The notes under the pieces were generated by a model, which was given only the letters and a program-made list of their open reading frames with translations, was not told the DNA's origin and made no database searches. Positions 8,825 to 64,000 of a stretch of 64,000 bases of DNA are shown here, one piece after another; the first letter of the stretch is position 1; the number at the start of each line of letters is the position of its first letter. A program made the translations under genes and the position numbers. This DNA comes from Macrostomum lignano (lineage: Eukaryota): positions 1-64,000 of the forward strand of contig NIVC01001236.1 in the NCBI GenBank assembly GCA_002269645.1, given 5' to 3'.

Positions 8825-11800
8825 CTATTCAGCATCCTGATATTCGTCATCAACCACAGCTTCATCAGCAGCCCGATTCGGCTCCACAGCAAAGAAAATC
8901 ACTCCAGTGCGTGGCTGGGCGTCTCCACCCGCAGCAGGCGGCAAATAGTCGCATACGTGAACTGTGGCGGGCAGGTGCGCTATTTGCATACAGAATCTGG
9001 ACTCCGCCTCATTCAACACATGCGCCTCCGAGTCCGGCTCCTGCAGCGTCAGGGCGAGTCCGCGGCTTCCGAAGTGTGCAGCACGGCCGATCTGTGAATA
9101 AAAAAGTTGAGAAAGCTATTGGTGTTTGTGAGCATCTGATTCTCAAAGCTCGTTTAAGGGCGAGTCTATAATTTTTTAAGGTCGATTCTAAGAATATGGT
9201 TAATGGTCGATTCTAGAAACAGTTTTAGAGCGATTCTAAAAATGCCTTGAATGAAGTGCTGAGAATTATTTAATGACGATTCTAAGATTTTTTTACGTGC
9301 GATCCTAAGAATTATCTAAAGGCGATTTAAAAACAATTTAAGGGCGATTCTAAGAAAGGGTTTTAAAGGCGATTCAAAGAAAGGGTTTGAGGGCGAGTCT
9401 AAGAAAGGGTTTAATGGTGATTCTAAGAAAGGGTTTGAGGGCGATTCTAGGAAAGGGTTTAATGACAATTCCAAGAAAGGGTTTGAGGGCAATTCTAAGA
9501 AAGGGTTTCAGGGAGATTCTAAGAAAGGGTTTGAGGGCGATTCTAGGAAAATGTTGGAGGGTGAGTCTAAGAAAGGGTTTAATGGTGATTCTAGGAAAGA
9601 GTTTGAGGGCGATTCTAAGAATGTTTTGAGGGCGATTCTAGGAAAGGGTTTAATGACAATTCCAAGAAAGGGTTTGAGGGCAATTCTAAGAAAGGGTTTC
9701 AGGGAGATTCTAAGAAAGGGTTTGAGGGCGATTCTAAAAAAGGTTTTACGGAGATTCTAAGAAGGTTTAAGGGAGATTCTAAGAAACAGTTTAAGAGCGA
9801 TTCTAAAAATGGTTTAAGAGCGATTCTAAGAATGATTCAAGGGCGAGTCTAAAGCTGGTTAAAGTGTGATTCTAAATATGCTTTGAATGAAGTGCTGGGA
9901 ATAATCTATTAATGGCTATTCTAAGAATGTGACAGACTAGCTGACTTTCAAAATTCTCTAACTGCTCACCCTGTACAGGTAGAGACCCGGGTCCGCAGGC
10001 AGACAGTAGTTAATAACTACGCCGACCCGTTGAAACTGCAGACCAAAGGCGTACAAATCCGTGCTGATTAGAATGCGCCGCTTGCAATTCCTGAACAGCC
10101 GGTAGTTCTCCATCCGGCTGGCCTGGCACAGGTCCCCGTGCGCCGCCAGCGCTGACAGGCCGCGAGATTTCAGGAATTTCTCCAGACTGTCGCACTGGCG
10201 CGGGGAATTGACAAATACGATTGCCTGCGGAGGTTTGCAGTGGCTCAATGAAATGAGTCACCACGATTAGAAGTAGGCAGAATGCCAACTCCCCAGATTA
10301 TCACTAAAGCCAGGTGCACCTGTTCAAACTCGAGTACTCGCAACAGCTTCAGCAGCCGAGCATTCTTAGCTCTGTAGCCGCAGTCTGCAATCGGCACGCG
10401 ATACTGCAGGAGGCTGTGCGGAGCCAGCTGAGCCTCATCGCTCAGGCACAGCTCATGCGGATTCTGCATCAGCTCCAGGCACTGCTGCCGCATCTGTGAG
10501 GTTTAGGAAATATAAGTATTACCTGCCTGTGTGGCTTACTGTGTGTTTGTGTCTGTCTCGGTGTCTGTCAGTCAGTCAGTCAGTCAGTCAGTCAGTCAGT
10601 CAGTCAGTCAGTCAGTCAGTCAGTCAGTCAGTCAGTCAGTCAGTCAGTCAGTCAGTCAGTCAGTCAGTCAGTCAGTCAGTCAGTCAGTCAGTCAGTCAGT
10701 CAGTCAGTCAGTCAGTCAGTCAGTCAGTCAGTCAGTCAGTCAGTCAGTCAGTCAGTCAGTCAGTCAGTCAGTCAGTCAGTCAGTCAGTCAGTCAGTCAGT
10801 CAGTCAGTCAGTCAGTCAGTCAGTCAGTCAGTCAGTCAGTCAGTCAGTCAGTCAGTCAGTCAGTCAGTCAGTCAGTCAGTCAGTCAGTCAGTCAGTCAGT
10901 CAGTCAGTCTGTCTGTCAGGCCCGGCACTCACAGCCGCACTGATGGTGGTGCAGCACATGAGAACCTGCCGATCGGGTGGTGCCAGCAGCAGCGCCTGCA
11001 CCGCCTCATCGCGCAGCAGCAGCTGGTCGCAGTCGTCCAGCATAACAATTCGCAGCTGGTCGGTGCGCAGGTGACCCCGGCGTGCCAAGTCCAGCAGGCG
11101 GCCAGGCGAGCCGACTGCGATGTCCGGCCGGGAGGCAGCAGCGGCAGCGTCTCGTCTTGATGAAAAAAGCGATGGGAGTGCATCGTCTCAATTGCATGTC
11201 TGAGATGCGTAAACCAAGCCTGCATACTTTGCATATCAAGTACCTTTCCGAGCCTTCAGGTACCTTTTGACACAGCAAAACACAGAGTTTCCCAGAATTG
11301 AGATGAGTTCCAAGCATCCAGCTGAGTTCCCAAGCATTGAGATGAGTTCCAAGCATCCAGCTGAGTTCCCAAGCAATGAGATGAGTTCGAAGCATTGAGA
11401 TGAGTTCCAAGCATCCAGCTGAGTTCCCAAGCATTGAGATGAGTTCCAAGCATCCAGCTGAGTTCCCAAGCATTGAGATGAGTTCGAAGCATTGAGATGA
11501 GTTCCAAGCATCCAGCTAAGTTCCCAAGCATTGAGATGAGTTCCAAGCATTGAGATGAGTTCCAAGCATCCAGCTAAGTTCCCAAGCATTGAGATGAGTT
11601 CCAAGCATCCAGCTAAGTTCCCAAGCATTGAGATGAGTTCCCAAGCATTGAGATGAGTTCCAAGCATTGAGATGAGTTCCAAGCATCCAGCTAAGTTCCC
11701 AAGCATTGAGATGAGTTCCAAGCATCCAGCTGAGTTCCCAAGCATTGAGATGAGTTCGAAGCATTGAGATGAGTTCCAAGCATCCAGCTAAGTTCCAAGC

Positions 11801-13975
11801 ATCCAGCTAAGTTCCCAAGCATTGAGATGAGTTCCAAGCATCCAGCTAAGTTCCCAAGCATTGAGATGAGTTTCCAAGCTTTGAAATGAGTTTCTCAAGC
11901 ATCCAGCTGAGTTTCCAAGCATTAAGATGAGTTTCTCAAGCATCCAGCTGAGTTTCCAAGCATTAAGATGAGTTTCTCAAGCATCCAGCTGAGTTTCCAA
12001 GCATTAAGATGAGTTTCTCAAGCATCCAGCTGAGTTTCCAAGCATTGAGATGAGTTTCCAAGCATTAAGATGAGTTTCCAAGCATTGAGATGAGTTTCCA
12101 AGCATTAAAATGAGTTTCCAAGCATTAAGATGAGTTTCCAAGCATTGAGATGAGTTTTCAAGCATTAAGATGAGTTTCCAAGCATTAAGATGAGTTCCCA
12201 AGCATTGAGATGAGTTTCCAAGCATCCAGCTGAGTTTCCAAGCATCCAGTTGAGTTTCGAAGCATCGGATGAGTTTCCAAGCATCCAGTTGAGTTCCCAA
12301 GCATTGAGATGAGTTTCTCAAGCATCCAGCTGAGTTTCCAAGCATTAAAATGGTTTTCCAAGCATTGAGATGAGTTTCCAAGCATTAAAATGAGTTTCCA
12401 AGCATTAAGATGAGTTTCCAAGCATTGAGATGAGTTTCCAAGCATTGAGTTGAGTTTCCAAGCATTGAGATGAGTTTCTCAAGCATCCAGCTGAGTTTCC
12501 AAGCATTGGGATAAGTTTCCAAGCATTAAAATGAGTTCCCAAGCATTGAGATGAGTTCCAAGCATCCAGCTGAGTTCCCAAGCATTGAGATGAGTTCCAA
12601 GCATTGAGATGAGTTCCAAGCATCCAGCTGAGTTCCCAAGCATTGAGATGAGTTCCAAGCATCCAGCTGAGTTCCCAAGCATTGAGATGAGTTCCAAGCA
12701 TTGAGATGAATTCCAAGCATTGAGATGAGTTTCCAAGCATTGAGATGAGTTTCTCAAGCATCCAGCTGAGTTTCCAAGCATTGAGATGAGTTTCTCAAGC
12801 ATCCAGCTGAGTTTCCAAGCATTGGGATAAGTTTCCAAGCATTAAAATGAGTTCCCAAGCATTGAGATGAGTTCCAAGCATCCAGCTGAGTTCCCAAGCA
12901 TTGAGATGAGTTCCAAGCATCCAGCTGAGTTCCCAAGCATTGAGATGAGTTCCAAGCATTGAGATGAGTTCCAAGCATTGAGATGAGTTCCAAGCATTGA
13001 GATGAGTTTCCAAGCATTGAGATGAGTTTCTCAAGCATCCAGCTGAGTTTCCAAGCATTGAGATAAGTTTCCAAGCATTAAGATGAGTTTCCAAGCATTG
13101 AGATGAGTTTCCAAGCATCCAGTTGAGTTCCCAAGCATTAAGATGAGTTTCCAAGCATTAAGATGAGTTTCCAAGCATTAAGATGAGTTTCCAAGCATTA
13201 AGATGAGTTTCCAAGCATTAAGATGAGTTCCCAAGCATTGAGATGAGTTTCCAAGCATCCAGCTGAGTTTCCAAGCATCCAGTTGAGTTTCGAAGCATCG
13301 GATGAGTTTCCAAGCATCCAGTTGAGTTCCCAAGCATCATGATGAGTTTCCAAGCATCCAGCTGAGTTTCCAAGCATTGAGATGAGTTTCCAAGCATTCA
13401 GCAGAGTTTTAAGGCATCCAGTCGAGTTTTGCAGCATCGCGGTACACTTTTAAGCATTCAGCTATCTTATACAGCCTTCTAAAGCGCCAATAAACAATCT
13501 GAAGACATCCGTAGCATCTCACTCAAGAAGCCCAAATAACTCAATCAGCCAGCTACCTGCCCGGAGCGCCACCGAGGAATTCGGCAACTCGCGGCCGACG
13601 TCCCGGACAGCGAGAGGAGAGGCAGCGCAGCTGTCGGACAGTCTGCACAGCCAGCTCCCGACTGTGACAGAGCACCAGAGCGCGAGTGGCGACAGAATTC
13701 CCCTCCAAATCAGCGGAGGCTGGGCTGAGCCTTTTGGCTTCATCAATCAGCGTCAGCAATCGCTGGGTGACGGCCACAGCGCAGGCGGTTGACTTGCCGC
13801 TGCCGGACGGCGCCTGGCATAGCAGATCGGCGCCAGACAGCGCCAGAGAGATGCAGCGCGCCTGAATAGCGCCGGGGCGCGCATAGCCGAGCTCGTCGCG
13901 TATGGCCCTGAGCAGACGCGCCGAGCTGAGCAGGTCGGCGAACTCTGTCGGGCTGCCGCCGCAGGTCTCAGTTGC
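8825..13975 (-). CDS. DDX39B-like: Divergent DDX39/UAP56-family DExD-box helicase paralog; 5 exons, no own ATG, catalytic motifs degenerate
   Basis: Exons complement(8825..9091,9970..10224,10320..10493,10933..11155,13557..13975) = 1338 nt, 446 codons, no frameshift. Colinear with UAP56: Q motif RPGAIQ, motif I APSGSGKS, Ia LCHSRELA, FLGG, GSPGRLL, II LDDCDQLL, LMQNP..L...QL..HSLLQY, FEQ|AIVFVNS, RRILIST, YLYR|IGRAAHFG. The 5' boundary (AAG|GCA at 13975) is less certain than the internal junctions. Confidence 0.88.
9170..9900. repeat. ~24-bp minisatellite (gggcgattctaagaaagggtttga) in DDX39-like intron 4
   Basis: Recurring gattctaagaa core with degenerate flanks. Confidence 0.9.
10567..10908. 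repeat. Near-perfect (TCAG)n microsatellite in DDX39-like intron 2
   Basis: About 85 units. Confidence 0.98.
11285..13440. repeat. 19-21-bp two-variant minisatellite (caagcattgagatgagttc / caagcatccagctgagttcc) filling DDX39-like intron 1
   Basis: About 2.1 kb of interspersed unit variants; explains the MLGNS.. ORFs. Confidence 0.95.
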
Positions 13976-59172: not shown

Positions 59173-61489
59173 AAACTTCTTTTCATCTTACTTGCTAAGC
59201 GAGCCAATTTACCTGATTATATGATGATTATATTATTAGTTCAAGTTCTGTAGTCTCTGCGAGGCTTCTTGCGCTTTAAAAGTCAACACAGCTTTCAGTG
59301 AGAGTCTCCTCGATGTTGACTCCGAACAATGCTCCCAAGAATACGAGCTGAGTATTCTCATGCCAGCACGTATCGCGAGTGCAGATTCAAAATGCATCAC
59401 TTCAGATTTGGACGGCAAAGCTGAACTGTCTCAGCCCGAGCCCGGCTGCCGCACTCCACCCGTCATTCCAACCCGGCATTGATCGGCCATCGATCGGATT
59501 CAATAAAATCGGGGGGGGGCGTCTCTGCTTACTCAAAAATTCTCTCCTTCAGCTCTGTCTCCCGCCGTAAGCCCGCCGATCGAAATCCCAAAGCCTGTCC
59601 CCTCAATTCCTTAATGGACCGCGGAGGATGAGTTGGGAATGGGGCCAGCATCCACTTCTCTCCATCAGCTTTGAAGGTGGCGAATCCTGCCAGCCCCCCC
59701 CCCCACTTCCCGATTCCCACCGACAAGTGCCGCAATTGGATTTTGCCCACCGCACTGCCGCTACTCGCGCCCCGCACTCAAACTCAAAACACTTTGATAT
59801 CCCATCTCGCACGCGCGGAATCCTCACCCCCAATATCCCACCGCGTTGAGTAGGGGCTTCAATAAAGAGGCCGGGGTGTCCAGGTGCCTAATCCCCAGGC
59901 TTCGGCGAGCGCAGTCTTCCGTGTCCATCATCTTCCCGCTCGCCCACTCCTCCGGCTCTGCGGTCCCCAGATTGGCAGGTGGCGCCCTCGAGCAGCCCAG
60001 AAATTCAGTCAGGACGCATTGGGTCAGGGCATTAAACACCTGAGCGAAACAGAATTTACAATTACTCCTCATTGGCATTTCAAACTTGATTTATTGAGAT
60101 TCGAGCCATGCGCGGCGCGTCATCTGCTGTCACAGCGAGGCCGTCAAAGTCTTCGATTGCACAGGCAGGCGCGACCCGCAGTTCCGCATGAGACAGCTGG
60201 GAGGGGGAGATGTAGCACAGGAAAACTTCGAACAGGTGCTTTCGATTTCCCTGGCTAATCAATGAATCCCAACGCAGATTGAAGCAATGGGGCTGGGCAC
60301 GGACTTTCAGTTTATATCCGGGATTCTGCCGCAATTGACAGCCGCTATCTCACCTGTCCATCAACTGAGTGCCAATTCGCAACTGTCGTTCCGGGAATCT
60401 GCAGGAACAGAGGAGAGGCCTGGCGGGGAGCGGCTTGGGTTCATAAATTTCACTGCAAAGCAGCCGCCCTACCTGGCAGCCGGGCCTGCAGGAATCCAGA
60501 TATTGCGACTGCGGAGAGGGGCGCCACGCCGCAGAGCAACCATGGCATAATTAGATCGTAGGATAAAATCTGCGAATGCCCGTCAAATCCCCGGTGTTTG
60601 CGCGAGCTTCCCTGGCGACGCTTCCCTGGATTCTGGTCTCTCCTCTCCCGTCCCTCCTGTCTCCTCTCTTTTCTCTCTGCTCTCTCCTCCCTCCTTTCTC
60701 CACACTCACCTCTCCTCTTCGATCTCTCTTTCTCACTACAGATTTATCCTCATTCTCATCTAGATCCCAAGCCCCAGGTGGGATCGAGCGGATATCAGGA
60801 AATCTTTCAGCCTCCTAATCGGATGAAGCCCGTCTTGTTGGGGGGGGGGGCTGCCTACCTGGCGATAATTGATTGGGGAATCGGGCGGAGACCGGAGCGC
60901 CAGGCCGAAATGGATTCGCCAATAAACTGAATTATTAATTCCAACCTATTCGCAAATTTGTCTTTTTTCTCTCTCTCTCTCTGCCTCATCCGCCGCTCCT
61001 TTCGATAATCCCACGAAGCCTGCCCTTCATCATTAGCCAGCCTCTTCAGGCGCTATCGCGAGCCATTTGTCATACGATGAGGCTTTGGCGGAGTCTGCAT
61101 ACGCGGCTGAAATCGCCTGAGCAGTGCTGCCTCCGAAATTCAAACAGTTGGAAAAGCTTGGAGCAGCAGCGGAGTCAATGCTTGTCACCGGACTGAGGGG
61201 TCACGCGGGTCGGAAGGGAGCTGCAGTGGGAGCCAGACAGGCGGCCCGGACTGCTGAGTGGCCCCTTCAGGCTGTCCTCTCCAAGAGGCCCTCTTGACTC
61301 CGCCTGAATGTAATTGAGCACCTGCAGAGTTGGTTGAGCAGACAACTGAGGGCACAACAGGTCAGATTGAGAACCACTCTGCTGGTAAATCTACAAGTAG
61401 CAAGTCAATGAAAGTAGCTGAGCAGAGCGAAATTAATAATGGGGATCCAGAATACTGCTTGAGATAGAGGGTGAGAGGTAAGGAATATA

Positions 61490-64000
61490 GGAGAGATGGG
61501 ATGGGAGAGACGGGATGGGAGAGACGGGATGGGAGAGTTAAGATGGAAGAGATGAGATGGGAGAGACGGGATGGGAGAGACGGGATGGGAGAGACGAGAT
61601 GGAAGAGACGGGATGGGAGAGTTAAGATGGAAGAGATGAGATGGGAGAGACGGGATGGGAGAGACGGGATGAGAGAGTTAAGATGGAAGAGATGAGATGA
61701 GAGAGACGGGATGGGAGAGACGGGATGGGACAGAAAGTATGGGAGAGACGGGATGGGAGAGACGGGATGGGAGAGACGAGATGGAAGAGACGGGATGAGA
61801 GAGATGGGATGGGAGAGGTGGGATGGGACAGAAAGTATGGGAGAGATGGGATGGGAGAGATGGGATGGAAGAAATGGGAAGAAAGAGACAGGATAGAAGA
61901 AACAGGATGGGAGAAGAATGGAAGAGACAGGATGGGAGAGATGGGAGGGAAGAGACAGGAAGGAAGAGATAAGATAGGAGAGACGGGATGGGAGAGACGG
62001 GATGGAATAGACGGGATGGAAGAGACGGGATGGGAGAGACGGGATGGAATAGACGGGATGGAAGAGACGGGATGGAAGAGACGGGATGGAAGAGACGGGA
62101 TGGAAGAGACGGGATGGAAGAGACGGGATGGAAGAGACGGGATGGAAGAGACGGGATGGAAGAGACGGGATGGAAGAGACGGGATGGAAGAGACGGGATG
62201 GAAGAGACGGGATGGAAGAGACGGGATGGAAGAGACGGGATGGAAGAGACGGGATGGAAGAGACGGGATGGAAGAGACGGGATGGAAGAGACGGGATGGA
62301 AGAGACGGGATGGAAGAGACGGGATGGAAGAGATAAGATAGGAGAGACGGGATGGAAAAGACGGGATGGGAGAGACGGGATGGAAGAGACGGGATGGAAG
62401 AGACGGGATGGAAGAGACGGGATGGAAGAGACGGGATGGAAGAGACGGGATGGAAGAGACGGGATGGGAGAGATGGGATGAGAGAGACGGGAGAGACAGG
62501 ATGGGAGAGATGGGAGACACGGGATGGAAGAGACGGGATGGAAGAGACGGGATGGGAGAGACGGGATGGGAGAGATGGAAGAGACGGGATGGGAGAGATG
62601 GGATGGGAGAGACGGGATGGGAGAGATGGAATGAGAGAGACAGGATGGAAGAGACGGGATGGAAGAGACGGGATGGAAGAGACGGGATGGAAGAGACGGG
62701 ATGGAAGAGACGGGATGGAAGAGACGGGATGAAGAGACGGGATGGAATAGACGGGATAGAAGAGACGGGATGGAATAGACGGGATGGAAGAGACGGGATG
62801 GGAGAGACGGGATGGAAGAGACGGGATGGAATAGACGGGATGGAAAAGAGAGGGGATGGGAGAGACGGGATGGAATAGACGGGATGGAAGAGACGGGATG
62901 GAAGAGACGGGATGGAATAGACGGGTTGGAAGAGACGGGATGGAAGAGACGGGATCGAAGACAGGATAGAAGAGACGGGATGGAATAGACGGGATGGGAG
63001 ACAGGATGGAAGAGACGGGATGGGAGAGACGGGATGGGAGAGACGGGATGGGAGAGACGGGATGGGAGAGACGGGATGGGAGAGATGGGATAGGAAAGAC
63101 GGGATGGAAGAGACGGGATGGGAGAGATGGGATGGAAGAGACGGGATGGAAGAGACGGGATCGTAGACAGGATAGAAGAGACGGGATGGAAGAGACGGGA
63201 TGGAAGAGATGGGATAGTAGAGACGGGATGGGAGAGATGGGATGGAAGAGACGGGATGGAAGAGACGGGATCGGAGACAGGATAGAAGAGACGGGATGGA
63301 AGAGACGGGATGGGAGAGACAGGATAGTAGAGACGGGATGGGAGAGATGGGATAAGAAAGACGGGATGGAAGAGACGGGATGGAAGAGACGGGATGGAAG
63401 AGACGGGATGGAAGAGACGGGATGGAAGAGACGGGATGGAAGAGACGGGATGGAAGAGACGGGATGGAAGAGACGGGATAGTAGAGACGGGATGGGAGAG
63501 ATGGGATGGAAGAGACGGGATGGAAGAGACGGGATGGAAGAGACGGGATGGAATAGACGGGATGGAAGAGACGGGATGGGAGAGACGGGATGGGATACAG
63601 AATAGAAGAGACAGGATAGAAGAGACGGGATGGAAGAGACGGGATGGGAGAGACGGGATGGGAGAGACAGGATAGGAGAGACGGGATGGGAGAGACGGGA
63701 TGGGAGAGACGGGATGGGAGAGACGGGATGGAAGAGACGGGATGGAAGAGACGGGATGGAATAGACGGGATGGAAGAGACGGGATGGGAGAGACGGGATG
63801 GGATACAGAATAGAAGAGACAGGATAGAAGAGACGGGATGGAAGAGACGGGATAGAAGAGACGGGATGGAATAGACGGGATGGAAGAGACGGGATGGGAG
63901 AGACGGGATGGAAGAGACGGGGTGGAAGAGACGGGATGGAAGAGACGTGATGGAAGAGACGGGATGGAAGAGACGGGATCGGAGACAGGATAGAAGAGAC
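61490..64000. repeat. 14-bp polypurine minisatellite (acgggatggaagag) running off the window end
   Basis: Period 14 with gggagag/gaatag variants, more than 2.5 kb. Confidence 0.97.

Follow-up and report, generated by a model that had tools for sequence, protein, structure and literature searches.

In a 64,000-nucleotide stretch of the Macrostomum lignano genome (GenBank contig NIVC01001236.1, positions 1 to 64,000; hereafter, the window), we found a five-exon gene on the minus strand encoding a DEAD-box protein of the DDX39/UAP56 family, to which the core mRNA-export helicase belongs. This DDX39-like gene is an intact, transcribed and very divergent extra copy, and its product is probably a non-enzymatic pseudo-helicase. 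The explanation to which we give about an even chance is that the gene is a lineage-restricted, fast-evolving DDX39/UAP56 duplicate, which is maintained as a coding gene but no longer works as an RNA-stimulated ATPase. We infer the loss of ATPase activity from the changes in its helicase motifs.

Translation of the minus strand between 8500 and 14300 showed that the five exons are joined into a frame of 445 codons without internal stops (Table 1). All four introns are of the GT-AG type, with the splice donors GTAGCT, GTGAGT, GTGCAC and GTGAGC and with acceptors ending in AG, and no disabling stops, frameshifts or lost splice sites were found in the window copy. Tandem repeats make up most of introns 1, 2 and 4. 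The other two sense frames contain 12 and 16 stops, respectively, and when the coding sequence was shuffled 20,000 times, every shuffled version contained stops (mean, 12.5). The open frame is not due to chance, and the absence of stops, as compared with 12-16 in the other sense frames, indicates that coding capacity was maintained.

The protein was recognized by the Pfam families DEAD and Helicase_C with 80 and 75.7 bits, respectively, both over the cut-offs. In a phmmer search of PDB, the closest solved relative was DDX39B/UAP56 (253 bits, E 3e-74), followed by Sub2 (213 bits) and eIF4A (160 bits), and the top non-self matches in a HMMER search of 1.84 billion representative proteins were canonical UAP56/Sub2 proteins with 36-39% identity. 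Among the known systems compared, DDX39B/UAP56 (Sub2, Hel25E and the canonical Mlig-ddx39 of this flatworm included) gave the best match in both sequence and structure across the whole helicase core. The subfamily signatures of DDX39 are kept, namely Cys as the third residue of motif II, CH[ST]RELA, LEF.Q..FV and the C-terminal RF...I..LP. While DDX39 proteins of mammal, plant and fungus are 65-69% identical to one another, the flatworm protein shows only about 35% identity to DDX39B/UAP56. It differs from DDX39B in the catalytic Glu and motifs III, V and VI, in the loss of the N-terminal extension (about 35 residues, acidic in UAP56; residue 11 of the flatworm protein aligns with residue 46 of DDX39B), and in the addition of about 17 residues inserted between motifs I and Ia and of a C-terminal tail. 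This tail runs about 38 residues past the end of UAP56 (about 8941-8828), is acidic at its end and was modelled as disordered.

A model built with AlphaFold2 had a mean predicted local distance difference test score (pLDDT) of 85.3 and a predicted template modelling score (pTM) of 0.83, and its best structural match was UAP56 (8enk; template modelling score 0.92 by target, root-mean-square deviation 2.1). The predicted structure, together with the sequence, shows the two-RecA-domain fold to be kept. The closed conformation of the model was rejected as evidence for domain closure, as it is inherited from the alignment. In a neighbor-joining tree, the protein fell within the DDX39 clade, with a very long branch that was joined to another degenerate sequence (P0073, described below). 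This placement may be affected by long-branch attraction, and we treated the grouping with P0073 as probable long-branch attraction and not as orthology. Taken together, these results support the descent of the flatworm protein, as a paralog with an intact spliced frame, from DDX39/UAP56.

Despite this ancestry, the protein departs from its family at positions of the helicase core that are nearly invariant. In an alignment of 20 DDX39, Sub2 and eIF4A-like proteins, 59 columns were conserved in at least 90% of the sequences, and the flatworm protein deviates at 16 of them. Three of the 16 changes are mere Thr-to-Ser replacements, in the P-loop, Ia and Ib, and most of the others lie in or beside the ATP site or in the domain-closure network. 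They comprise E32A and S35G in the Q region, E181D at the catalytic base, A209T (with S208C) in motif III, R332F and D335Q in motif V, D346C in motif Va, and H356Y, G362A and R363H in motif VI. F65C, L70T and L146A are located outside the named motifs. Among 24 other proteins aligned with it, 22 have the Glu of motif II. In contrast to these changes, the residues of domain 1 that bind adenine and phosphate (Y31, Q38, G58, G60, K61, S62 and D180) and the motif VI arginines R357 and R360 are kept, as are nearly all of the motifs contacting the RNA backbone in both domains (Ia, GG, Ib, IV, QxxR and T327 of motif V). The initial annotation of this DNA had described an intact five-exon DDX39/UAP56 paralog with clean splice sites, the altered motifs DDCD (at 11037-11026), CTT, AFGLQ and YRIGRAAH, the preserved Q motif, P-loop GKS, Ia HSRELA, GG, Ib and QxxR, and an extra acidic C-terminal tail, all of which we recovered.

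The residue pattern predicts that binding of nucleotide and of RNA or partners is retained and that a normal RNA-stimulated hydrolysis cycle is not, because, as judged from established DEAD-box enzymology, the binders are kept and the catalytic and closure residues are lost. We consider it unlikely that the protein is still an enzyme, i.e., a divergent DEAD-box ATPase with slow or differently regulated hydrolysis that is possibly activated by a partner, although residual slow ATPase activity is the main biochemical rival to the pseudo-helicase reading. Several kept features would be expected in such an enzyme: Lys and Ser in the P-loop, Gln in the Q motif, Asp at the first and last positions of motif II, R357 and R360 out of the three arginines in motif VI, and the motifs contacting RNA on both domains. 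In addition, Asp is chemically able to serve as a base, and the Walker B position is an acidic D/E in many P-loop nucleoside triphosphatases, so that some activity could survive the replacement of the catalytic Glu by Asp, a point that tells against a complete loss of catalysis; our literature searches returned nothing on the effect of a motif II Glu-to-Asp change. What speaks against an enzyme is that several separate catalytic or coupling elements are hit together (E to D, SAT to CTT, R to F, D to Q, the Va D to C, H to Y, G to A and R to H). In two alignments, of 25 and 38 DEAD-box proteins, the motif II Glu, SAT, the motif V R and D, the Va D and the motif VI H, G and R all occupy positions with a conservation of 90% or more, and single changes at several of these positions abolish RNA-stimulated ATPase activity in DEAD-box mutagenesis.

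If the pseudo-helicase reading is correct, the protein would bind RNA, partners of UAP56 or both without normal ATP turnover; it would be a static binder, an adaptor or a competitor, and not an enzyme that remodels. In place of the acidic extension that UAP56 has at its N-terminus, the protein may use its C-terminal tail, which is predicted to be disordered and is acidic at its end. RNA is held without turnover by the DEAD-box cores of eIF4AIII in the exon junction complex and of DQAD clamp mutants such as Vasa DQAD. These keep all closure residues and are blocked at hydrolysis or product release, whereas the closure residues in motifs V and VI of the flatworm protein are changed; similar holding of RNA would be possible in the flatworm protein if ATP still binds. 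An ATP-locked clamp is one conceivable but weakened variant. Against it, residues for ATP-driven closure are lost (Arg and Asp of motif V, His and the last Arg of motif VI); in its favour, RNA-contact residues are kept on both domains.

The gene has been deposited in databases, where it is uncharacterized and mis-modelled in all three entries. These are UniProt A0A1I8GSZ1 (273 amino acids), UniProt A0A1I8F2H9 (838 amino acids), in which NUP50 is fused with the helicase, and GenBank PAA70478.1 (Mlig026976.g1; 221 amino acids), which is named "hypothetical protein BOX15_Mlig026976g1, partial". The identifier Mlig026976 gave no match in the literature full text. A second genomic copy (L001, NIVC01001234.1:208867-224871) has exons 99.6% identical to those of the window copy, with five substitutions in 1338 nucleotides, of which three alter the protein (T4A, S8N and S285N) and two are synonymous. 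Consensus errors, which the initial annotation had named as a possible source of the motif changes, do not account for them, since the same residues recur in the second copy and in the three database models, the latter derived from two older assemblies.

The frame of the gene lacks a start codon of its own. The first in-frame ATG is codon 178, none occurs in exon 1, and the open frame on the 5' side of the acceptor preceding exon 1 (Table 1), out to 14008, contains none either. With no ATG ahead of codon 178, the frame must obtain its start codon from another source. The spliced leader (SL) of M. lignano, CGGTCTCTTACTGCGAAGACTCAATTTATTGCATG, is 35 nucleotides in length and terminates in ATG (PMC8629364), and in flatworms translation can initiate at an SL AUG (Cheng et al. 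2006, as cited in PMC12582326). When the SL is joined at 13975, the sequence reads ATG GCA ACT GAG... (M-A-T-E-T-C-G-G) in frame, giving a protein of 446 amino acids including the Met, with the predicted SL-started N-terminus (M)ATETCGGSPTEFADLLSSAR. The mRNA most likely starts by SL trans-splicing at this position, just downstream of the NUP50-like gene on the same strand, and the terminal AUG of the SL would supply the initiator Met of M-ATETCGG... The acceptor reads AAG and deviates from the commonest M. lignano trans-splice motif, [T/C]TNCAG.

The GenBank annotation of the Mlig_3_7 assembly was derived solely from RNA-seq transcripts, which had been divided at trans-splice and poly(A) sites known from experimental mapping (PMC5730564). 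We found that PAA70478.1 starts at L001:10001, the base homologous to window position 13975, and that its exon 1/2 and 2/3 junctions are identical to ours. This RNA-seq-derived model, which begins at the acceptor and uses the first two junctions, provides good, though indirect, evidence for transcription of the locus, for its modelled splicing pattern and for SL trans-splicing. The same annotation bears on the 838-amino-acid UniProt model, in which ...RIVPFL of NUP50 is joined in frame to ATETCGG. Such a product could arise by cis-splicing from a donor in the last NUP50 exon to 13975 and would tether the helicase module to the nuclear basket. In its favour, the NUP50 and helicase genes neighbour each other on one strand and probably belong to one primary transcript. 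However, the donor would be CTG|GTCCGG, a poor site, the join would delete the last 22 residues of the RanBP1 domain, and the model comes from the older ML2 assembly and contains frameshifted junk segments. The RNA-seq-based annotation separates the NUP50 and helicase genes and starts the latter at the acceptor, and we regard a NUP50-helicase fusion as highly improbable.

A further alternative is that the gene is a transcribed but functionless relic, i.e., a long-kept duplicate made redundant (e.g., by the recent genome duplication in M. lignano), which is now drifting and whose frame is a leftover. Several observations are in line with this and count against a maintained pseudo-helicase. No ortholog outside M. 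lignano was detected either by a word-index search or by an exhaustive HMMER search of the 1.84 billion representatives, both of which returned solely M. lignano models of the gene itself; this is weak evidence, as the index missed the known self-hits P0040 and P0041. A control search with the neighbouring NUP50 yielded a 66%-identical protein in a Logan assembly, so related transcriptomes are at least partly represented. With no ortholog at hand, long-term purifying selection can be inferred only from the integrity of the frame. Between the window and the second copy, the exons diverged by 0.37%, which is not significantly lower than the 0.73% of non-repeat non-coding DNA (p = 0.29), and the three nonsynonymous and two synonymous differences are too few for a ratio of nonsynonymous to synonymous rates (NUP50 showed nine and ten, respectively). 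The protein is rich in Leu (14%), Ala (13.5%) and Arg (10%) and poor in Lys (1.6%), which, together with a GC content of 0.70 at first codon positions, fits relaxed constraint under GC pressure. It is conceivable that function was lost recently. The examined parts of the neoblast, germline and expression supplements (PMC5816591, PMC7336406 and PMC5730564) contained no entry for the gene, and the full-length protein, with or without the SL Met, with SL read-through or as the allele variant, had no exact match in a collection of 15 billion proteins. Finally, the helicase exons of the second copy carry four single-base deletions relative to the window, at sites corresponding to window positions 10977, 10202, 8930 and 8874. 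They account for the truncation of the GenBank protein to 221 amino acids, and would weigh on the same side if they were real frameshifts.

These deletions are most likely errors of long-read (PacBio) assembly, since all of them lie in CCC, CCCC or GGG runs and homopolymer deletions were equally frequent elsewhere (three in 1236 nucleotides of non-repeat non-coding DNA and two in 1424 nucleotides of the NUP50 reading frame). In all, six single-base deletions in C/G runs of the second copy cut both GenBank models, NUP50 to 197 and the helicase to 221 amino acids, and probably reflect systematic homopolymer errors in the Mlig_3_7 annotation. Against a relic, neutral drift to about 35% identity should leave about 12 stops, as compared with the 0 observed, and the splice sites are all intact. 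Residues were retained in accordance with their conservation in the family, in 73% of the columns conserved at 90% or more, 48% of those at 75-90%, 43% of those at 50-75% and 17% of the variable ones; retention thus favours the highly conserved structural columns. The fold of the model was also predicted with confidence. In addition, the GC content of the exons (0.70, 0.48 and 0.70 at the first, second and third codon positions) is sharply unlike that of the introns (0.37-0.50). On these grounds the indirect evidence favours a gene maintained as protein-coding, and we consider a relic rather unlikely.

Canonical DDX39 genes, which the initial annotation had proposed to look for, are present elsewhere in the genome. 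These Mlig-ddx39 genes (transcripts RNA1509_632 and RNA1509_16673; gene Mlig030213.g1) match human DDX39B with e=0.0, and the published primers for RNA interference (RNAi) of Mlig-ddx39 have no match in the window. They are trans-spliced, expressed in neoblasts and the germline, and give the fastest lethal RNAi phenotype (PMC5173321, PMC5816591); hence, the canonical gene is separate and essential. Another transcript, RNA1509_10881 (1326 nucleotides; Helicase_C 79.5; e=2e-69 to DDX39B), shares a Corset super-cluster with canonical ddx39. We considered it as a possible transcript of the DDX39-like gene.

By the criteria of PMC9539457, a pseudohelicase has a homologous fold with degenerate catalytic motifs, as the flatworm protein does, and combines a demonstrated lack of catalysis with a retained biological function; for the flatworm protein, the maintained frame argues only for a coding function that has been kept. 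DEAD-box pseudo-helicases are few. The validated ones that we found in the literature were Utp25 and MUT-15, and our literature searches turned up no description of one derived from DDX39. Utp25/Def, a pseudohelicase of the small-subunit processome, arose from duplication and divergence of a DEAD-box gene and is functional, with its fold kept and its motifs dispensable (PMC9539457). It is ancient, eukaryote-wide and essential, in contrast to the flatworm gene with no ortholog detected outside M. lignano. MUT-15 of Caenorhabditis elegans is an RNA-binding scaffold with a DEAD-box fold and degenerate ATP motifs, and is ATPase-dead (bioRxiv 10.64898/2026.09.04.749402). We propose it as a functional model for the flatworm protein, with the difference that the activity and partners of MUT-15 are experimental, whereas the flatworm protein is known from its sequence and model. 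MUT-15 is also far more degenerate, lacking the Q motif and having NNAE for DEAD, and is not derived from DDX39. The flatworm gene thus stands as a credible candidate that is much less degenerate than Utp25 or MUT-15, recently derived from DDX39 and so far confined to one lineage.

Two further sets of DDX39-like sequences were noticed in the searches. One is a eukaryotic open reading frame of 389 amino acids (P0073; L002 8001-9170, ENA ERZ22147071, contig ctg29513l), which exists as two near-identical intact copies on different contigs (P0073 and P0188). Like the flatworm protein, it has degenerate motifs V and VI, with DNCD and AVT at motifs II and III, lacks the N-terminal extension and begins just before the Phe of the Q motif; unlike the flatworm gene, it is intronless. 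It is 30% identical to the flatworm protein and 39-41% identical to canonical DDX39, and because it is closer to the latter, it is probably an independent candidate for a DDX39-derived pseudo-helicase showing the same trend. The other is a "Sub2-like" paralog of Podila/Mortierella (P0053, P0189 and P0190), which keeps DECD and has CDTSTLA at Ia, GK for GG, VPAR at Ib, AAA at III, SRCVD at V and FNRVGRAGR at VI; by its sequence, it is another diverging duplicate of the DDX39 family.

Table 1. Coordinates in the window of the DDX39-like gene, its helicase motifs and the neighbouring genes.
Feature	Position	Strand	Description
3' splice acceptor	13977-13976	-	AG (ctgcctgccAAG|GCAACT); probable SL trans-splice site, phase 0 with the coding frame
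Exon 1	13975-13557	-	Codons 1-140; Q motif, P-loop, insert of about 17 residues, Ia, GG; no in-frame ATG
Q motif	13888-13862	-	Q38 kept
P-loop	13813-13790	-	APSGSGKS, kept
Motif Ia	13669-13649	-	CHSRELA, kept
GG	13576-13568	-	Kept
Intron 1	13556-11156	-	GT..AG; nearly all 20/39-bp minisatellite (11285-13409)
Exon 2	11155-10933	-	Motifs Ib, II and III
Motif Ib	11112-11098	-	GSPGR, kept
Motif II	11037-11026	-	DDCD (GAC GAC TGC GAC); catalytic Glu to Asp
Motif III	10953-10945	-	CTT; SAT in canonical proteins
Intron 2	10932-10494	-	(GTCA)n microsatellite at 10563-10919
Exon 3	10493-10320	-	Linker and beginning of second RecA domain
Exon 4	10224-9970	-	Motif IV, QxxR, degenerate motif V, first part (YR) of motif VI
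Motif IV	10221-10207	-	IVFVN, kept
QxxR	10125-10114	-	QASR, kept
Motif V	10065-10036	-	STDLYAFGLQ (AFGLQ 10050-10036), degenerate
Motif VI	9975-9970 and 9091-9074	-	YRIGRAAH, interrupted by intron 4
Intron 4	9969-9092	-	24-bp tandem repeat at 9153-9852
Exon 5	9091-8825	-	Remainder of motif VI, C-terminal helicase elements, extra tail, TAG stop (8827-8825)
NUP50-like gene, large 3' exon	16728-15305	-	FG-rich region and RanBP1 domain (Pfam Ran_BP1); upstream neighbour of the helicase gene
Amidohydrolase (NagA/AMDHD2-like)	about 7060-6842, 6489-..., 5131-4805	-	Downstream of the helicase gene
ZMPSTE24-like CAAX protease	3663-2890, 2236-...	-	Pfam

As had been pointed out in the initial annotation, the helicase gene adjoins NUP50, and we found it directly downstream of the NUP50-like gene, which was recognized by its Ran_BP1 domain in the window and by PF08911 (NUP50) on the homologous neighbour gene at the second copy. 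An AATAAA at about 14403-14398 lies about 420 nucleotides ahead of the helicase acceptor, and the layout of the two genes looks polycistronic or operon-like. A more specific version of the pseudo-helicase reading would have the protein co-transcribed with NUP50 in an operon, started from the SL AUG and binding RNA or partners independently of ATP, e.g., competing with or adapting for UAP56 on partners of the THO/ALYREF type at the nuclear pore; in this full form, we think it quite improbable. The initial annotation had also proposed a role in TREX export or in handling Piwi-interacting RNA (piRNA) precursors. The part of its interpretation that stood is a paralog with multiple substitutions affecting ATP hydrolysis and closure, whereas no link to TREX or piRNA precursors was seen; such a role is speculation, and a stem-cell role likewise a guess, prompted by the ancestry of the gene and its NUP50 neighbour.

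Four minus-strand genes stand in a row from about 16728 down to 1193, i.e., the NUP50-like gene, the DDX39-like gene, an amidohydrolase and a ZMPSTE24-like CAAX protease (Pfam), and the spacers between them are full of tandem repeats. The row may represent an operon-like polycistronic unit. The first coding exon of the amidohydrolase (7060-6842) has no in-frame genomic ATG and is in phase 0 after TTCCAG|GCAGCC (about 7038/7037), in which TTCCAG fits the M. lignano trans-splice motif; from its sequence, it looks like a second gene of the window relying on an SL start codon. The divergence between the second copy and the window (20903-7781) is a mosaic, with 99.3-99.6% identity in the non-repeat DNA of the helicase gene, 98.5% in the NUP50 frame and only 85.5% in the spacer between these two genes (about 15180-14380), which suggests gene conversion or a mixed history of duplicated regions in a neopolyploid genome. 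Elsewhere, at 28000-49800 and 61400-64000, the window is occupied by very large higher-order tandem arrays with 48-mer, 29/30-mer and 128-mer units in blocks of about 1.3-5 kb, and by a 14-mer array of more than 2.5 kb running past the window end. These arrays yield long spurious open reading frames in several frames.

The finding flags a gene that is held in databases solely as truncated or fused models, and illustrates M. lignano coding sequences that have no genomic start codon and are supplied with one by the spliced leader. Should the gene turn out to be a drifting relic, there would be nothing unusual in the finding. If, on the other hand, the pseudo-helicase reading with the NUP50 operon is true, a regulatory non-enzyme would have been built from the core mRNA-export helicase. 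M. lignano is tractable by RNAi, transgenesis and in situ hybridization, with canonical ddx39 already in routine use as an RNAi control, so that a non-catalytic sibling would be directly testable and would reveal what a DDX39 core does when it binds without turnover.

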